Of a stretch of DNA of 64,000 nt, positions 12,201-32,544 are shown in pieces. Location of the stretch: sequence record MZ443769.1; one strand, 5' to 3'. Under the pieces are notes generated by a model that made no database searches, was not told the DNA's origin, and saw nothing but the letters and a program-made list of their open reading frames with translations. Position numbers and translations under genes: made by a program. Positions within the stretch are counted from its first letter, which is position 1. Each line of letters starts with the position of its first letter.

Positions 12201-12590
12201 ATGGATCGTAATAAATTGAAGTTGTTGATGGACAGTCTCAACGGTAACTTCTCCGATATTGATGCAGACCTGATGGACACAACTGTAGGCAATCTCACTC
12301 GTTCTGAAAAGAACATTGTGTTCCTCGTTAGCGCAGAGTACATCACTCAGCATATAGTGAATCTCGGTCGTGCTGTCGAGAAGGCTAACGCTTCTTGGTT
12401 CGAGCCTATCGAAAAACTCGAAACGTTGAAAGAAGGTTTGTTCGGTCACGTTAACGGTGTTCCTGTGTATAGCAACTGGATGCACATTACGCCAGACGAA
12501 TCTGTTAATCATAAGCGACCACTGCTTGGCGTTTACTTCACAGACAAGAACATGATCAAAAGACTTCCCTTAGAAGCTTTTTGTGATTAA
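12201..12590 (+). CDS. hypothetical protein with a capsid-P-domain-like segment
   Basis: GGAG RBS; GLFGHVNGVPVYSN. Confidence 0.65.
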   Translation: MDRNKLKLLMDSLNGNFSDIDADLMDTTVGNLTRSEKNIVFLVSAEYITQHIVNLGRAVEKANASWFEPIEKLETLKEGLFGHVNGVPVYSNWMHITPDESVNHKRPLLGVYFTDKNMIKRLPLEAFCD

Positions 12591-13436: not shown

Positions 13437-14309
13437 ATGAGTTCTACAGCGGTCATACGCGAGAAAGTTCGCTCGGCATTATTTGCGAGTCATAACAAGC
13501 CTGTCGATATGCGACAAGCGTTGATGGACACTTTGAGTTGGATTCCGAAAGAAGACCAAGTTACTGTGTTCATGTCGGGTGGCATTGATAGTCATGCTTG
13601 CTTGTTTGCTTGCATCGACCTCGGCCTCAAAGTTAACGTGCTGTCGTTCACACTCGACTCACACGAAAGCTCTGACTTCAAGGCAGCGAGACACGCAGCC
13701 GAAGTTTTCGACCTTGACTTCACGCCGATCGTTCTTCCAACGAACGAAGCCCATCTGAAAAGCTGGGTACGTTTCGCAGTACACAAGCTCGGGCTCACGA
13801 ACAAAAGTGAGATCGAATGTTCTTGGCCGCTGTACACCGCAATCCGTCATCTCGAAGGAAAGACCAAACATATCGTACTCGGTCTTGGCGGCGACTCGTA
13901 CTTCTTAATGGCAAAGAGCGCTTCGATGCACTGCAAAGACTTAGTGTTAGAGCAACGTCGAAAAGCTACGCGCCGTGTGCTGTCTCAGAACGTTCTCGTT
14001 AAGCGTGAAGCTTTTGCTCGTGGTATCTACGCGCATCTTCCGTACTTCGAGTTCGGCCGCACTTACGCAGAGCTGCAAATGGAAACCGACTTTAAAAAGA
14101 TCAACAGTCCGCAGAAGTCGTTTTACAATCAGGCATTCCCTGAGTATCGCAAGCGCTGTAAAGTACGCGGTCACCAAAACTTCCAGCTGGGAGACACTAA
14201 CATTAGCGGCATCTTTAGCGATGTGTTGTTGAAGTCCGACTGGAACACAAGAAACTTGAAAGCAATCGTTGGCGTATACAATGACGTTGCATCAGGAATC
14301 TGTAAATAG
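13437..14309 (+). CDS. asparagine-synthetase-like ATP-dependent amide ligase lacking the glutaminase domain
   Basis: PP-loop FMSGGIDS, SDFKAARHAA, IVLGLGGDSYF; 290 aa with no N-terminal Ntn domain. Confidence 0.82.
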   Translation: MSSTAVIREKVRSALFASHNKPVDMRQALMDTLSWIPKEDQVTVFMSGGIDSHACLFACIDLGLKVNVLSFTLDSHESSDFKAARHAAEVFDLDFTPIVLPTNEAHLKSWVRFAVHKLGLTNKSEIECSWPLYTAIRHLEGKTKHIVLGLGGDSYFLMAKSASMHCKDLVLEQRRKATRRVLSQNVLVKREAFARGIYAHLPYFEFGRTYAELQMETDFKKINSPQKSFYNQAFPEYRKRCKVRGHQNFQLGDTNISGIFSDVLLKSDWNTRNLKAIVGVYNDVASGICK

Positions 14310-14593: not shown

Positions 14594-15232
14594 ATGTCTT
14601 TTGAGCTTGTAAACATTCTGCCGATACTGTCGCAATCAACTACAGTTCATCGTGCAGCCGACGGCACTGATGTTCACATCGTCCGAAACTTCTTCACACA
14701 TACGGAATGCGAAGCACTAATCGCTGAGGGCATTCAGTATCTCGAACCGAGCCGTGTTGGTGGACCGAACGATACAACTAAGATCGATAAAACAGTTCGC
14801 TCGTCCTCTACTGCGATGTTAAGCGAAGTATCTCAACACCCTGCTGTACTCGAAGCTATTCGTCGCATTGATGACGCATACGGTTACCCACATCTGTTCA
14901 GCAACCCGCTGCAACTCAATCGCTATCAAGTCGGTGAAGAGTTCGTAGCGCATCACGACTGGCATGACCCTGTTCGCCAGCATGATCGTATTCAACGTGA
15001 AGGCCAACGCACTTGGACCTTCTTGATGTACCTCAACGATGACTTCGAAGGAGGTCAGACTGAATTCCCGTTGATGGATCTCACAGTAACTCCTGAGCGC
15101 GGTATGCTTGTTCTGTGGAACAACTTGCTTGTTGACGGTTCAGTCAATGAGACAACGCTACACGCATCGAAGCCTGTAACGTCAGGTACGAAGTTCATGA
15201 TGACCAAGTGGTTTAAGAACAAAGTGCTGTGA
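14594..15232 (+). CDS. 2OG-Fe(II) oxygenase, prolyl-4-hydroxylase family
   Basis: FFTHTECEALI, VRSSSTAML, LQLNRYQVGEEFVAHHD (HxD), TFLMYLND..EGGQTEFP, TLHASKPVTSGTKFMMTKW. Confidence 0.9.
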   Translation: MSFELVNILPILSQSTTVHRAADGTDVHIVRNFFTHTECEALIAEGIQYLEPSRVGGPNDTTKIDKTVRSSSTAMLSEVSQHPAVLEAIRRIDDAYGYPHLFSNPLQLNRYQVGEEFVAHHDWHDPVRQHDRIQREGQRTWTFLMYLNDDFEGGQTEFPLMDLTVTPERGMLVLWNNLLVDGSVNETTLHASKPVTSGTKFMMTKWFKNKVL

Positions 15233-16211: not shown

Positions 16212-16670
16212 ATGATGAACCTGTTTTCTATTCTGAAACAGCAAGTGAAGAAATCGCTGACGACAGAAGCAGCGCTCGAACCAGAAGTACGCGCACTGTT
16301 TGACTGGCGTTACTCTGTAGACGTCAAAGGTCAGATGTACATCATCGGTAAAACTGGCGCGAACACCTGCTTCTATATCGAACCGGGAACAGTTGAGCCT
16401 ACCGCATGTTATCCCGATGCGTTGCTGGCAAAAATTGACGAGTGGGGAACAGCGAAATACGTTTCCTACTCCGTGTTCTTCAAGCACTTCGATAGTCCTG
16501 TTGCAGAGAATATCAAGACGCTTGAGAAAGCACAGACGGGTAAGCCGAAGAAGTTTAAGAAGGGTTACTTCATCTGTGGTCTGACGCCGAAAGGCAAACG
16601 TGTGAAGTTGTTCAGACTGCAACAAGGTCTGAGCGGTATGCAATGGGTTGCAGTGGAGCCTAAGAAATAA
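16212..16670 (+). CDS. hypothetical protein
   Basis: GAGG RBS. Confidence 0.7.
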   Translation: MMNLFSILKQQVKKSLTTEAALEPEVRALFDWRYSVDVKGQMYIIGKTGANTCFYIEPGTVEPTACYPDALLAKIDEWGTAKYVSYSVFFKHFDSPVAENIKTLEKAQTGKPKKFKKGYFICGLTPKGKRVKLFRLQQGLSGMQWVAVEPKK

Positions 16671-21718: not shown

Positions 21719-22103
21719 CGACGATGCAGTCCGCAAAATGTATCAAGCCCGCAACCAACTCGTTGAACAAAAGATGCGAGAAATCTGGACTATGCGTGGT
21801 TGGACTATCGAGTGGGACTGGCACTGTGGATTTTGCGACGATGCCGAGTTCTTGTTTGATGCTGAGGGCAAGCGTCTATACTCCATAGAAAATGGTATTC
21901 CTCATGAAACGTCAATCGCTACGTTGCTGGACAAGCATAAGCTGAATGTCACGTACATGAAGAAAACTGTAAAGATCATAAACAAGCAAGCTGATAACCC
22001 TGTTACGGGGTCTGGTGATTGCATTTATATGGCATACATCAATTGGCTACTAGCCTTCGAAAAGCAGAAATTTGAGGAGAAGAATAAGTGCGCTGCGAAT
22101 TAA
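21687..22103 (+). CDS. hypothetical protein
   Basis: Overlapping operon ORF. Confidence 0.6.
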   Translation: MYQKLDTKKPDDDAVRKMYQARNQLVEQKMREIWTMRGWTIEWDWHCGFCDDAEFLFDAEGKRLYSIENGIPHETSIATLLDKHKLNVTYMKKTVKIINKQADNPVTGSGDCIYMAYINWLLAFEKQKFEEKNKCAAN

Positions 22104-22606
22104 CCGAACTGCCTATCGCTGTCGATCAAGCAGAAGCAATCATGGCCAGCGTGTTTGCTTTGGCGGTTGCTTCTAAATCAAAGCGCCGTGCTACTGCTGC
22201 AATGATGATTCAATTCATTGACGGCTTTCCGATGATCAAAAGCAGCGGCGTTAACGGTACTGTGCCGGGTTCGTCAAACGTTTGTGAAACACCAGACCTG
22301 CTGACAACGCTGCCTCATGTTATTCATGCGGAAGCGAACTGCCTTGACCGTCTGAATGATTACAACTCTCTGGTGACTGACCAAGACATTCTGTTTTGCA
22401 CAGACAGTCCGTGCCCAGATTGTTTGCGTCAACTGACAGACGAAGGCGTTAAGACCGTTGTGTATGCGCGTGAGTATCGCCTGACTGATCATCTCGACGC
22501 TTCTGATATTCGCATGTTCTGCCTCGATCTGAAAGCTGTTGAACAGCGTATGATTCGTAGCATCGAACGTATGTCGGAAGTTATCTCTACAACACCAAGT
22601 GTCTAA
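22088..22606 (+). CDS. dCMP deaminase family
   Basis: HAEAN and SPCPDC zinc motifs, SGVNGT. Confidence 0.85.
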   Translation: MRCELTELPIAVDQAEAIMASVFALAVASKSKRRATAAMMIQFIDGFPMIKSSGVNGTVPGSSNVCETPDLLTTLPHVIHAEANCLDRLNDYNSLVTDQDILFCTDSPCPDCLRQLTDEGVKTVVYAREYRLTDHLDASDIRMFCLDLKAVEQRMIRSIERMSEVISTTPSV

Positions 22607-26645: not shown

Positions 26646-27746
26646 ATGTCAAAACAAATGCTTGACCTCCGCAACCCTCAGGACTTTGCTTTCTTTAACA
26701 TGCACAGTGCTGATGGCCAGTACATCTCTGTGTGTGACACTATCCTGCGTGAAGGTACGCTTGAGTGGGATGCAGCACGTACAGACGATCAGTGGCAGAC
26801 AATCATCGGTGTGGGTATGCAGTTGGTCAACACGCTGATCGCTTTCCCTGCGTTGCTGTCTGCGCGTAAGAACTGGGTAGCAGCCGTTGATGAAATGTGC
26901 TGGATGGCTCGCGGCGAAACGAATATCAAAACCCTGGGTTCTAAAATCTGGGACGAGTGGGCTGACGAAAACGGCGAGTGTGGTCCTATCTACGGTGAGA
27001 TGTGGCGACGTTGGCCTGATGTGAAAGCGTTTTTCGATGCAGCTGGTGCTTTACCTGCATTATGGTCTCCTGATCATATTCGCAATCAAGCGGAAATCTC
27101 GCGTATGCGTGAAGACGGATATCTCGAAACGCCTATGTCAGACGGTCGCATTCTGTTTGAAGGTCAGATTGACCAGTTCGCTAATGCGCTCGAACACATC
27201 ATGGCGCGTTCGCGCTCTCGTCGTATTCGCGTTCAGGGATTCAACCCGTCTTATGTGAACATGCAGGGTCTGCCTCCGTGTCATACCGAGTTTGAATTCA
27301 ACGTTACTCAGGCGACTGATTACGAAACCGCACAAATGAACTGGCGTGGGTTCGCACCGCAGAAAGACAGTCTGCATATCACTGTGCAATTACGTTCTAA
27401 CGACTGCCTGCTTGGGCGTCCCTTCAACATCATGGGCTACAGCGCCATGCACCAGTTGATTGCGAAGTGGGCTGGCCTGAACGTTGGTAGCTTCACGTTG
27501 AACTCGACTAACACTCACATCTATACGCACCACGTTGAAGCATATAAAAAGCAGCGTGAGCAGTACGTCGAACTTGAAACGCAGATGAAAGAGACAGGCA
27601 ATCCTATTCAGTATCCGTTGCTGGAAATCTCTGATGAAGTGCTTGGTCTGACTGCGAAAGAACTTCTCGATAACGTGAACATCGACTGGTTCCAGCTTCT
27701 CGACTATTCGCCTAAACCTGCTGTTCGTGGACGGGTGACTAAATGA
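26646..27746 (+). CDS. thyA: thymidylate synthase
   Basis: WDEWADENGECGPIYG, SRRI, LPPCH, RSND..PFN, THIY. Confidence 0.92.
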   Translation: MSKQMLDLRNPQDFAFFNMHSADGQYISVCDTILREGTLEWDAARTDDQWQTIIGVGMQLVNTLIAFPALLSARKNWVAAVDEMCWMARGETNIKTLGSKIWDEWADENGECGPIYGEMWRRWPDVKAFFDAAGALPALWSPDHIRNQAEISRMREDGYLETPMSDGRILFEGQIDQFANALEHIMARSRSRRIRVQGFNPSYVNMQGLPPCHTEFEFNVTQATDYETAQMNWRGFAPQKDSLHITVQLRSNDCLLGRPFNIMGYSAMHQLIAKWAGLNVGSFTLNSTNTHIYTHHVEAYKKQREQYVELETQMKETGNPIQYPLLEISDEVLGLTAKELLDNVNIDWFQLLDYSPKPAVRGRVTK

Positions 27747-29708: not shown

Positions 29709-30413
29709 ATGGCAAAAATTGCTAAAGCAAAAGCAAAGGACGGGAAAAAGAAAGGCGCTATGGCTATTGATTTGAAATCTTTCAAGTCGGCTAAACAGCT
29801 TAAAGGCGCTAAGTACAATCCACGTTTCATTACAGACAGTCGCTTGAGCGCACTCGAAAGTTCGTTGGGTAGCTTCGGTGACTTGTCTGGCATCGTGTTT
29901 AACAACAGCGTCAGTTCAGGCGTTCTTATCTCCGGTCACCAGCGTCTCAAGTCAATCAACGATTGGGAAACGCGCATCGAACTCCAGCCTACTTCTGACA
30001 AGTACGGTACAGTCGCTTTGGGTTACGTTCATGCAACGCATCCGAAGTCGAGCAAGACGATTAGCATTCCTCTGCGTATCGTAAACTGGAACGATAAGAA
30101 AGCCGAGTACGCTGCGAACATTGCTGCGAATGCGCACGGCGGTGAGTTCGATAACAAGAAGCTTGCGAATCTGGTTGAGAAACTTGACCTGACTTCTATC
30201 AAGCCTCAACTGCTCGGACTCGACCCGCTGGAAATCCGTGGTCTGCAACAGAAGCTGAAATCACAAGCACTTGTTGAAGGCGAGAAACGCGCAGGCAAAA
30301 CTACTGGTCAGATGAACGGTAGTACGGGCGCATTCAAAGAATACACACCAGATGAAGTCGGCGATAAGCTGTCATGCACCTGCCCACGCTGTGGATTTAA
30401 GTTCGAGGGATAA
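29709..30413 (+). CDS. ParB/Srx-like N-terminal domain protein with C-terminal Zn knuckle
   Basis: LKGAKYNPRFI..LESSL..FG..LISGHQRL..ANIAAN; ends CTCPRCGFKF. Confidence 0.8.
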   Translation: MAKIAKAKAKDGKKKGAMAIDLKSFKSAKQLKGAKYNPRFITDSRLSALESSLGSFGDLSGIVFNNSVSSGVLISGHQRLKSINDWETRIELQPTSDKYGTVALGYVHATHPKSSKTISIPLRIVNWNDKKAEYAANIAANAHGGEFDNKKLANLVEKLDLTSIKPQLLGLDPLEIRGLQQKLKSQALVEGEKRAGKTTGQMNGSTGAFKEYTPDEVGDKLSCTCPRCGFKFEG

Positions 30414-30414
30414 T

Positions 30415-32544
30415 ATGATCATCAAGCCGCCTACAATGAAAGAGATCAACGCGCAAGACAACAATTGGCGTGGCATGAGCTTCTTCGCAGGCTGTGGTGG
30501 TTCTTCTACCGGTCTCAAATGGGCCGGTATTAACATCATCTTGAGTAATGAGTTCGTAGACGTGGCGCGTGAGTCTTATCAAGCGAACCACCCATCTACG
30601 TTAGTTCTCCCTCACGATATCCGTCGTCTCGACCCGAAGAAGATTATGCAGCACTTCGGGATGGGTAAGGGTGAACTTGATTTCCTCGATGGTAGCCCAC
30701 CATGCTTCACTGAGAACACTCTGATTCACACTGCTGAGGGGATGAAGTTCATCTCTGATGTTAATGTCGGCGACATGGCAATGACTTCTGTTGGTCGTTA
30801 TCATGAAGTGTACGATACTATGGTGCGTCCTTATGTTGGTACGATGCACAAGATCGAAACACTGCTCGGCGCGAATAACGCAACGCCTGAACATCCGTTC
30901 TTCATTCGCCGCGTTCAACCTACCGGCTTGTGGTCTGAACCTTTCTGGTGTGATGCGAAAGATGTACAAGAAGGTGATTTACTCTCAACACCTCGAACAA
31001 CTCCTGACATGGGTGCTGACGCTTATCATGGTCAAATGTCATTGCTGACGCCTGTCATTCAGAGCTGGGTAACTTTCCCTGAGTTCTGGTGGGCTATCGG
31101 TCATTGGTGTGCGCACGGTACTCTTGAAGTTGTGCAGGGTGTCGATGTTGTTAGCTTCGAATCGCACACAGCTCAGGAAAACGATCTGATTGAGCAGGTG
31201 TTTGATGTTCTGAAAATCAGTAGCATCAACAGCGTAGACACAACCGTTGACCAGCGCAAGACGTATCGCGTTGTCATGGATTCAGAACTGTTTGCGTTCC
31301 TGAGCAAGTTCGTGGCACAGGGTAAGAACAACCTGTCTCGTCGTCTGCCGTCGATGATCTTCCACTTAGCTACTGAACTGAAACAGCAATTCATTCTCGG
31401 CTATCTCGGTCGTGACTACGTTAGTGCAATGGGCATGAGCCAGTTGATTAGCACAGACAACCGTCGCTTCCTCACTGAAATGAATTACCTGACGTGCTCT
31501 GCATTCAACAGACCTCTGTTCGATGGTATGTTGTTCTCTGATGTGAACTACGGTTCAGCGCTTACGCCTCGTGATCGCAATCAGAAGAAAGAGCATGTCG
31601 GCTATCTGCTGCTGCAAGATGAAAACAATTTCTTCTACGAGTTCAACGATAACGATCCACATCTGTGGGTTCAAGTGATTGAGAACCTAGCGTATCAGAC
31701 AACCTGTGACGTGTACAACTTCTCGGTCAGTGAAGACGAGACGTATGTGGCGAACAGCATTGTCGTGCATAACTGCAAAGGCTTCTCGACTGCTGGCGTG
31801 AAAGAAGAAGGTTGGGGTAAAGAAGTCAAGTACAGCGAGAACAAGAAACAGCAGGTTGATGACCTGTTCGATCAGTATTGCCGTATGATTAGTGGCTTCC
31901 AGCCTAAAGTGTTCACAGCGGAAAACGTCAGTGGTCTTGTGAAAGGATCTTCTAAAGGTTACTTCCTTGAGATCATGAAAACGTTTGACGAGCTTGGCTA
32001 CTATGTCAAAGCACCGTTGATTAACAGTGCATGGCTTGGTGTTCCACAGTCGCGTGAGCGTATCATCTTCATGGGTGTGCGTAAAGACGTTGCACATGCG
32101 TTGGGATATCGCTCAATCGGTACTGCTGTGCCTGCTGTCGTGCCTGCTTCAAGCATGGCTGTGCTTGCTGATGCTCTGCCTAACATCCTGCGATACAAAT
32201 CGGCTGAGAAAGATATCATCAAGTATAAGCCCGCGATGAACGGACCTATGCCTACGATAACTGCTGCTGATGCGATTGCGTATGAGACGGCACGATTCTC
32301 TTCTGCTGGATTTATCGAGGACAACAAGGGCATTCGTCGTAAGCTTACGATTGATGAACTGAAAGTTGTTTCCGGTCTGCCTGCTGATTACAAGCTGGTC
32401 GGTAAGTTCGAACAACAGTGGGAACGTCTCGGTCGTATCTGCGTACCTCACATGACTCATGCTGCTGCGACTGCGTTGATCAATCATATTCTTGTGCCTT
32501 ACGCCAAGAAGAAGAAACAGAAACCGGGCGCTCTCTTCCGCTAG
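30415..32544 (+). CDS. C5 cytosine transferase (DNMT fold), intein-containing; candidate carboxymethyltransferase (CmoX-like)
   Basis: Motif I FFAGCGG, IV GSPP|C, VI ENVSGL, VIII VPQSRERI, IX RKLTIDEL, X LGRICVP (Arg instead of Asn); ATG at 30415 follows the ParB stop. Confidence 0.88.
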   Translation: MIIKPPTMKEINAQDNNWRGMSFFAGCGGSSTGLKWAGINIILSNEFVDVARESYQANHPSTLVLPHDIRRLDPKKIMQHFGMGKGELDFLDGSPPCFTENTLIHTAEGMKFISDVNVGDMAMTSVGRYHEVYDTMVRPYVGTMHKIETLLGANNATPEHPFFIRRVQPTGLWSEPFWCDAKDVQEGDLLSTPRTTPDMGADAYHGQMSLLTPVIQSWVTFPEFWWAIGHWCAHGTLEVVQGVDVVSFESHTAQENDLIEQVFDVLKISSINSVDTTVDQRKTYRVVMDSELFAFLSKFVAQGKNNLSRRLPSMIFHLATELKQQFILGYLGRDYVSAMGMSQLISTDNRRFLTEMNYLTCSAFNRPLFDGMLFSDVNYGSALTPRDRNQKKEHVGYLLLQDENNFFYEFNDNDPHLWVQVIENLAYQTTCDVYNFSVSEDETYVANSIVVHNCKGFSTAGVKEEGWGKEVKYSENKKQQVDDLFDQYCRMISGFQPKVFTAENVSGLVKGSSKGYFLEIMKTFDELGYYVKAPLINSAWLGVPQSRERIIFMGVRKDVAHALGYRSIGTAVPAVVPASSMAVLADALPNILRYKSAEKDIIKYKPAMNGPMPTITAADAIAYETARFSSAGFIEDNKGIRRKLTIDELKVVSGLPADYKLVGKFEQQWERLGRICVPHMTHAAATALINHILVPYAKKKKQKPGALFR
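30703..31773 (+). mobile_element. 357-aa intein with degenerate LAGLIDADG endonuclease, inserted before the catalytic Cys
   Basis: Starts CFTENTLI, block B ATPEHPF, ends ANSIVVHN with +1 Cys; blocks C and E read AIGHWCAHG and FILGYLGRD. Confidence 0.93.

Follow-up and report, generated by a model that had tools for sequence, protein, structure and literature searches.

We analyzed a stretch of 64,000 nucleotides from sequence record MZ443769.1 (the window), which is identical to bases 1-64000 of the 261-kb genome of the jumbo phage Erwinia phage pEp_SNUABM_52, and in it a plus-strand gene for a cytosine C5-methyltransferase-like protein that carries an arginine in motif X where an asparagine is usual. 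The gene is predicted to encode an intein-split DNA cytosine C5-carboxymethyltransferase of the CmoX family, for which carboxy-S-adenosyl-L-methionine (Cx-SAM) and not S-adenosyl-L-methionine (SAM) would be the donor. Its open reading frame spans 30352-32544 on the plus strand. Translation most likely starts at ATG 30415, since this codon is preceded, at a distance of 5 nt, by a GAGGGA ribosome-binding site, lies 1 nt past the stop of the preceding gene, and corresponds to the RefSeq start of the homologue in phage vB_EamM_Y3 (genus Sasquatchvirus), which is 98% identical to the window across the gene. In the resulting 709-residue precursor, Pfam recognizes a DNA_methylase domain (PF00145, E 8e-38) together with intein and Hint domains. 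The features of the locus are collected in Table 1.

Table 1. Features of the predicted carboxymethylation genes in the window (positions count from the first nucleotide of the window; pLDDT, predicted local distance difference test).
Feature	Coordinates	Strand	Basis
cmoX precursor gene, intein-split C5-cytosine carboxymethyltransferase (predicted), 709 residues plus stop	30415..32544	+	PF00145; 8YF3 top PDB match
N-extein, residues 1-96: motif I FFAGCGG (F24), motif II NEF (E46, F47), motif III D68, S94-P95-P96	30415..30702	+	alignment; pLDDT >90
Intein, 357 residues, CFTENT...SIVVHN, residues 97-453, exactly between Pro96 and the catalytic Cys	30703..31773	+	insertion relative to intein-free homologues; TIGR01443
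C-extein, residues 454-709: Cys454, Lys455, ENV (E503), QSRER (R547, R549), target-recognition region, motifs IX and X	31774..32541	+	
Codon of catalytic Cys454, also the intein +1 nucleophile	31774-31776	+	
Motif X, WERLGRICVP; G673 at 32431-32433, R674 (CGT) at 32434-32436	32419..32448	+	translation and alignment
ParB-N-domain-like protein with C-terminal CPxC zinc ribbon, directly upstream of cmoX	29709..30413	+	family profile
cmoA, carboxy-S-adenosyl-L-methionine synthase homologue, 256 residues	12641..13411	+	TIGR00740; 4GEK match
cmoY-like ATP-dependent amide ligase, asparagine-synthase/PP-loop family, 290 residues, SGGIDS	13437..14309	+	PF00733, E 3e-5
Conserved 150-residue protein of the PaBG gp307 family, candidate module member	16215..16670	+	33% identical to gp307, E 7e-22

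Translation of 32413-32454 on the plus strand gives QQWERLGRICVPHM, in which motif X reads G-R where Dcm has GNSVVV; the arginine, which a sequence-only reading of this DNA had already pointed out, is residue 674 of the precursor. We aligned the whole precursor with its relatives and found Arg674 in one column with Arg350 of SpCmoX (the enzyme of Synechococcus phage S-B43, PDB entry 8YF3), with the motif X arginine of gp309 of the Pseudomonas jumbo phage PaBG, and with the asparagine of Escherichia coli Dcm. The strings that share this column are ERLG-R-ICVP in the window, ERVG-R350-MVPP in SpCmoX, and RQFG-N-SVVV in Dcm, and two close N-type relatives have ERLG-N-SVPP. The register of Arg674 and Arg350 is the same in phmmer searches against the PDB and in MAFFT alignments. 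As the column holds both SpCmoX Arg350 and the canonical asparagine, Arg674 occupies the motif X asparagine position (Asn304 in M.HhaI). The sequence-only reading had placed the arginine at the position equivalent to M.HhaI Asn304 and M.MpeI Asn374, and this is where it falls, by way of Dcm, the N-type relatives, and the published SpCmoX comparison (PMC12783734). A search of the PDB with the C-terminal 81 residues (E<=10) returned 8YF3 as the only true match and did not reach motif X of M.HhaI or M.MpeI.

The position is well characterized in other enzymes. In M.HhaI, Gln82, Tyr254, and Asn304 crowd the transferable group, and the Q82A replacement alone lowers methylation 16-fold (Lukinavicius et al., PMC3526304). 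The motif X residue thus lines the transferable-group pocket, in agreement with the earlier statement that the asparagine adjoins the SAM methyl group. In the SpCmoX crystal structure, Arg350 stands where M.HhaI has Asn304 and makes direct contact with the carboxymethyl group of the bound Cx-SAM, mirroring the engineered M.MpeI variant N374K (PMC12783734). The argument that a basic residue in place of the asparagine can give Cx-SAM use, as in N374K, and can bind the carboxylate is therefore sound. Wild-type SpCmoX accepts Cx-SAM as its sole donor and rejects SAM, and its R350N variant has lost activity with both donors and does not switch to SAM (PMC12783734). An arginine-to-asparagine exchange in the window enzyme, which had been proposed as a way of comparing the two donors, would for this reason be no clean discriminator.

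Of 96 aligned sequences, 92 have Arg at the motif X position, 3 have Asn, and 1 has Met. The arginine is kept in five jumbo phages whose exteins are 70-84% identical, and it is encoded by CGT, CGC, CGA, or AGG among the relatives, four different codons that point to selection on the amino acid. The motif X arginine is neither a chance substitution nor a sequencing oddity.

We compared the enzyme with proteins of known structure. The C-extein has SpCmoX as its best PDB match (E 7e-33), ahead of M.HaeIII (1e-9) and M.HhaI (5e-7), and the window enzyme and SpCmoX share 36% sequence identity. An AlphaFold (AF2) model of the precursor, in which both exteins have pLDDT values above 90, again finds 8YF3 first in Foldseek (E 4e-17, target template-modeling score 0.77, with a match that spans both exteins), followed by M.HhaI (about 0.5), M.HaeIII, and M.MpeI. 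All the listed Cx-SAM contacts of SpCmoX are conserved, with Phe25, Glu47, Phe48, and Asp69 corresponding to Phe24, Glu46, Phe47, and Asp68 in the window enzyme. The cytosine-binding glutamate (Glu503 in ENV) and arginines (Arg547 and Arg549 in QSRER, a QxRxR motif) are likewise kept. Ser95-Pro96-Pro97-Cys98 of SpCmoX is represented by Ser94-Pro95-Pro96 and Cys454, so that the intein separates SPP from the catalytic cysteine; by coincidence, the unspliced precursor also reads SPPC, through Cys1 of the intein.

The combination of SPPC with G-R recurs in 110 of the best 120 database homologues. In a quick maximum-likelihood tree, one clade of 77 rows, 72 of them Arg-type, includes the window enzyme as well as SpCmoX, the latter on a long branch. 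This clade is split from Dcm and from an SPbeta-like methyltransferase by a long branch (length 3.7; Shimodaira-Hasegawa-like approximate likelihood ratio test 98). The CmoX family was described in December 2025 with exactly this signature, and the window enzyme is therefore not the founder of a new enzyme class: the published work comprises 5,615 candidates, a crystal structure, the arginine signature, and the same gene context (Yang et al., Nat Commun Dec 2025, PMC12783734). That paper and its supplements make no mention of Erwinia, PaBG, inteins, or chorismate mutase, and the supplements none of jumbo phages. By homology and gene context, the window enzyme is a new CmoX member, distinguished by an intein at the catalytic cysteine and by a gene module that is split over 17 kb.

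A second residue of the pocket deviates from the methyltransferase consensus. Lys455 (31777-31779), which follows the catalytic cysteine, takes the position of M.HhaI Gln82, and the canonical P-C-Q is absent. In 91 of the 92 Arg-type sequences the post-Cys residue is Ala, Lys, Ser, Cys, or (once) Arg, not Gln, whereas the three Asn-type sequences and Dcm all have Gln there. The three sequences that combine Asn with Gln (P0084, P0090, and P0115) form a single clade nested in the Arg-type clade and appear to represent a natural double reversion in one lineage. Neither cmoA nor cmoY was found in the 2.6 kb downstream of the P0115 gene; the Asn-type contigs measure 2-6 kb, which is not enough to demonstrate that cmoA is missing. 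That the two residues of the transferable-group pocket change together strengthens the case for G-R as a cofactor signature and suggests that both positions must change for a clean donor switch, which fits the dead R350N variant of SpCmoX.

Different motif X residues are found in two other phage groups. Flavobacterium phage FpV9 (L005:2704-3771) has an SPPC-type methyltransferase with G-M at motif X, on a long branch inside the Arg-type clade; about 32 Flavobacterium phage records carry an enzyme of this type, and none is among the cmoA matches. In a Staphylococcus phage SPbeta-like locus (L006:7983-9682), cmoA lies directly beside a very divergent C5-methyltransferase, which keeps PCQ and has V-G-G-V at motif X. 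If this enzyme is a Cx-SAM user, it would be so by different determinants.

The intein is inserted into motif IV. Residues 97-453 are precisely missing from all 95 aligned homologues, and the landmarks of a splicing element are intact: Cys1 (Cys97), a block B TPEH (TxxH), the terminal His452-Asn453, and Cys+1 (Cys454). The model for the intein C-terminal region, TIGR01443, scores 26.7 and thus above its cutoff of 15.6, and PF14890 matches with E 6e-8. The Pfam models Intein_splicing and Hint_2 stay below their gathering scores (33.0 versus 35.8 bits and 20.8 versus 28.4 bits, respectively). An intein at the same site is found in phages Y3, Yoloswag, pEa_SNUABM_39, and Yersinia phage fHe-Yen9-02, with intact termini in all of them. 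Its body has 99% identity in Y3 and 38-70% in the other three, which are more distant, and in the phages that share it the exteins are 70-84% identical and every catalytic residue is kept. A search of 1.8 billion representatives produced 1,803 relatives of the intein at E<=1e-3. Among the best 150, most match the full intein length inside unrelated host proteins, and at least 22 are inserted at this PC site in other C5-methyltransferases, both Arg-type and canonical PCQ/GN-type. By these matches, inteins target the insertion site repeatedly, in this phage and elsewhere. Because Cys454 doubles as catalytic residue and +1 nucleophile and the SPPC motif is split by the intein, an active enzyme would arise only after splicing.

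We next consider the supply of the donor. The product of the cmoA gene in the window matches E. coli CmoA over its full length (residues 11-256; 4GEK, E 6e-29) as well as 1IM8 (E 3e-26). Arg213 aligns with E. coli Arg199 within the ...KR..LE.V motif of 4GEK. In E. coli CmoA, this arginine forms a salt bridge with the cofactor carboxylate and is specific to CmoA as opposed to ordinary methyltransferases (PMC3663124). No homologue of CmoB was found in the phage records, except for a 3.4-kb fragment that resembles host DNA, and this leaves the Arg-type methyltransferase as the only candidate consumer of Cx-SAM.

The second substrate of CmoA is prephenate, whose availability is an open question in the CmoX paper (PMC12783734). 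Directly upstream of cmoA, two metagenomic contigs encode a type II chorismate mutase (PF01817; L017:11022-11375, E 9e-12, and L018:11847-12134, E 2.5e-13), which would supply prephenate from the phage itself. An open reading frame at 12201-12590, upstream of cmoA in the window, was considered as a counterpart and rejected, as it has no similarity to these two enzymes and no Pfam match; the window yielded no chorismate mutase counterpart.

The genes concerned carry other names in the databases. MZ443769.1 labels its cmoA, ParB-like, and cmoX genes 'hypothetical protein'. In RefSeq relatives, CmoA is called 'tRNA methyltransferase' and CmoX 'DNA-cytosine methyltransferase' or 'modification methylase NgoFVII'. 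Only GenBank KY984068 (phage Y3) has the correct CmoA name, with the identical protein entered as Cx-SAM synthase.

The ligase encoded next to cmoA is 27% identical to SpCmoY over 266 residues (E 2e-21), 37% identical to PaBG gp306, and 38-40% identical to the cmoA-adjacent ligases of four metagenomic jumbo-phage contigs (L017-L020). SpCmoY ligates glycine to 5-carboxymethylcytosine (5cxmC), and the published product is 5-glycylcarboxymethylcytosine. Given that the window ligase is only 27% identical to SpCmoY, the amine it attaches may not be glycine. In Yersinia phage fHe-Yen9-02 (L015:20001-21672), CmoA is 94% identical to that of the window, but the adjacent ligase only 33%, and terminase and CmoX are 66-70% identical. 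This disparity between CmoA and ligase points to a recent exchange of cmoA or to a replacement of the ligase, possibly with a different amine.

The protein encoded directly upstream of cmoX has no Pfam match as a single sequence. A profile of its family detects the Spo0J/ParB N-domain (6SDK, E 3e-4) and also ParB and Noc, with conserved NPR and GHxR boxes. A gene of this family directly precedes cmoX in PaBG, Yoloswag, fHe-Yen9-02, locus L012, and the four metagenomic contigs as well, and CmoX has been reported in the company of phage CmoA, an AMP-forming ligase (CmoY), and a ParBc protein (PMC12783734). The gp307 family is marked by an invariant GK..ANT and three tryptophans. Its members accompany cmoA and cmoY in PaBG, where the gene lies between the two, in L017-L020, where it follows cmoY, and in fHe-Yen9-02. 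The 150-residue window member has no Pfam match, and its AF2 model (pLDDT 87) has no PDB fold match at E <0.3.

The order of these genes varies. PaBG has ParB-CmoX-CmoA-gp307-ligase and S-B43 has CmoA-CmoY-CmoX, and in L017-L020, which encode near relatives, ParB-CmoX-...-CmoA-ligase form one block. When phages with related terminases are compared, cmoA occurs together with cmoX in 48 Erwinia records, 2 Dickeya AD1 records, and the Yersinia phage, and neither gene was found in the six Dickeya JA-phage records. PaBG, whose terminase is more distant, holds both. A published comparison likewise lists exactly these genes for AD1 and Y3 and not for JA11 (Table 5, PMC6143709). The functional link between the methyltransferase gene and cmoA, which the sequence-only reading had drawn despite their distance, is thus supported by adjacency in PaBG, S-B43, and the four metagenomic contigs and by the joint presence or absence of the two genes.

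Taken together, homology to SpCmoX and gene context support the earlier idea of a natural carboxymethyltransferase: the gene at 30415-32544 very probably encodes a CmoX-family DNA cytosine C5-carboxymethyltransferase that acts with the phage CmoA and the CmoY-like ligase. Splicing would remove the 357-residue intein and join ...GSPP to CKGFS..., thereby creating SPPC. Judging by its homology to the E. coli and S-B43 enzymes, the phage CmoA would convert SAM and host prephenate to Cx-SAM. The spliced enzyme would flip out its target cytosine, and Cys454 would attack C6. By analogy to SpCmoX (8YF3), C5 would then take the carboxymethyl group from Cx-SAM, whose carboxylate would be held by Arg674, yielding 5cxmC in phage DNA. 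With Lys455 in place of Gln, both residues that are predicted to line the transferable-group pocket would be changed. The CmoY-like ligase would most likely adenylate the carboxylate and couple an amine to it, and the resulting amide hypermodification may shield phage DNA from host nucleases. The upstream ParB-like protein would be a conserved partner.

Several observations weigh against this assignment. The enzyme shares no more than 36% identity with SpCmoX and has a different target-recognition region. The inactivity of SpCmoX R350N would make the arginine necessary and does not imply that it suffices for donor choice. Intein splicing is assumed from the intact motifs. In the window, cmoA and cmoX lie 17 kb apart, and CmoA is encoded on only 4,257 of the contigs that hold the 5,615 CmoX candidates (PMC12783734). 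The window CmoA scores below the equivalog cutoff of TIGR00740 (E 2.4e-41, 142 bits; cutoff 193.3) and below that of NF011995 (105 bits; cutoff 285), and the E. coli SAM contacts Asn90 and Asn132 are not conserved in it. Compared with E. coli CmoA, the phage enzyme SpCmoA, whose activity is proven, scores much like the window protein (about 30% identity, E 5e-30, versus 30%, E 3e-30), indicating that the NCBIfam cutoff is tuned to bacterial orthologues. In the literature on Y3, AD1, PaBG, and Alexandravirus, we found no DNA-modification experiments.

Other readings of the gene have to be weighed against a dedicated carboxymethyltransferase. The enzyme has the fold and all catalytic motifs of C5-methyltransferases, cmoA is 17 kb away, and RefSeq and GenBank use the name DNA-cytosine methyltransferase, as would fit an ordinary SAM-dependent enzyme that forms 5-methylcytosine (5mC) and tolerates the motif X arginine, with cmoA serving another purpose such as 5-carboxymethoxyuridine formation in host tRNA. 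This is very unlikely, since both pocket residues are off consensus (Lys455 for Gln, Arg674 for Asn) and since SpCmoX rejects SAM and the M.HhaI Q82A exchange by itself is costly for methylation; in addition, the phage has no CmoB to use Cx-SAM on tRNA, and cmoX and cmoA come and go as a pair and are neighbors in six other loci. Donor use could also be promiscuous, with a mixture of 5mC and 5cxmC that is set by the Cx-SAM supply from CmoA. We regard this as improbable because wild-type SpCmoX took Cx-SAM only, although M.MpeI N374K is indeed a methyltransferase made to accept Cx-SAM, and the pockets of the window enzyme and SpCmoX are not identical (Lys455 versus Ser99). Moreover, nearly all members of the clade have the arginine and lack Gln, and where reversion occurred it affected the two pocket residues at once, a pattern that speaks for two discrete states and against a continuum.

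The protein might instead be inactive, a relic in which an unspliced intein, as a selfish element, interrupts the catalytic motif; the subthreshold Pfam intein scores and the low confidence of the intein part of the structural model would be in line with this. Against it, Cys1, TxxH, HN, and Cys+1 are all intact, the enzyme is kept in other phages despite divergence of the intein, and the recurrence at the same C5-methyltransferase site, in at least 22 of the best 150 relatives, is usual for a functional homing intein. We thus consider inactivity highly unlikely. It is close to negligible, in our view, that the carboxymethyl group goes to RNA, single-stranded DNA, or host DNA, as a weapon instead of self-protection: SpCmoX acts on double-stranded DNA, 75% of GC sites are modified in S-B43 virion DNA, the ParB-like DNA-binding partner is conserved, and the target-recognition region is of the DNA type. 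In favor of such a target, the chemistry of CmoA and CmoB originally acts on tRNA.

Starting from the assignment as a CmoX-family carboxymethyltransferase, a more detailed scenario is conceivable but rather doubtful. In it, the Erwinia, Dickeya, and Yersinia jumbo phages would form a different 5cxmC amide by means of a divergent CmoY and the gp307-family protein, donor choice would be governed by a two-residue switch that reverted once, and carboxymethylation would be gated by splicing. The notion of a different amide derives from the divergence of CmoY, with 27% identity to SpCmoY and 33% between phages with 94%-identical CmoA.

We compared the predicted system to related ones. SpCmoX and the window enzyme agree in fold, clade, the SPPC motif, the arginine at the M.HhaI Asn304 position, and all the listed cofactor contacts. 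They differ in the intein at the catalytic cysteine, in the Lys instead of Ser that follows this cysteine, and in overall sequence. As the target-recognition region differs, the GC specificity of SpCmoX cannot be assumed for the window enzyme. The S-B43 genome also encodes CmoA, a CmoY-type ligase, and a ParB-domain protein, in one operon there, whereas cmoA-cmoY and parB-cmoX are 17 kb apart in the window. PaBG gp310-gp306 provide counterparts for the ParB-like protein, CmoX (47% identity, with Lys after the cysteine and the motif X arginine), CmoA (42%), the gp307-family protein (33%), and the ligase (37%). The five genes of PaBG form one contiguous cluster, with an intein-free methyltransferase; in the window, the genes form two or three groups and the methyltransferase bears the intein.

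Engineered enzymes offer a second point of reference. In M.MpeI N374K, a CpG methyltransferase that accepts Cx-SAM, and M.HhaI Q82A/Y254S/N304A, a variant for extended cofactors, the positions of the motif X asparagine and of the post-Cys glutamine have been altered, and N374K, like the window enzyme, has a basic residue for the asparagine. These variants are laboratory mutants from another branch, whereas the window clade is natural and its changes are ancestral. M.HhaI, M.HaeIII, and Dcm share with the window enzyme the fold, the ten-motif architecture, and the mechanism of cysteine addition, but combine PC-Q with G-N where the window enzyme has PC-K and G-R. In the E. coli CmoA/CmoB pathway, the Cx-SAM synthase is homologous to the phage protein, Arg199 is kept, and an arginine recognizes the Cx-SAM carboxylate. 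The acceptor is 5-hydroxyuridine in tRNA there; the phage is without CmoB, and its acceptor is predicted to be C5 of DNA cytosine, by way of a Dcm-type enzyme.

The outcome is a confident functional re-annotation with some new detail, namely an intein-bearing CmoX in culturable enterobacterial jumbo phages. If the assignment is correct, easily cultured jumbo phages (about 48 Erwinia amylovora phage records, Dickeya AD1, and the Yersinia phage) carry DNA derived from carboxymethylcytosine. Several of these phages are in development as biocontrol agents against fire blight. The modification would bear on escape from host restriction and CRISPR and on the behavior of phage DNA in sequencing, cloning, and restriction mapping, and these phages would provide tractable enterobacterial systems for the CmoX field beside the cyanophage. 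The co-variation of two positions together with a natural revertant clade provides a testable rule for separating carboxymethyl- from methyltransferases in sequence data.

The neighborhood of the module contains further genes. A 2-oxoglutarate/Fe(II) oxygenase at 14594-15232 (prolyl-4-hydroxylase type, 3ITQ, E 1e-23), located 285 bp downstream of the ligase gene, was weighed as a candidate for a tailoring role. Y3 and Yoloswag have it, but AD1, PaBG, and L017-L020 do not, and it is therefore probably not part of the pathway; we did not count it in the module. A DUF1611 protein is encoded beside the ligase in two loci, in the gap between cmoX and the ligase in L020 (11128-12156) and in the gap between cmoA and the ligase in Dickeya AD1 (AD1_017, PMC6143709), and adds to the variable accessories of the module. 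In the stretch that separates the two module halves, the window also encodes a Dam-type N6-adenine methyltransferase (PF02086; 18608-19450), a dCMP deaminase (22088-22606), and a 366-residue thymidylate synthase (26646-27746), which covers the whole 266-position Pfam model and has about 100 extra residues.

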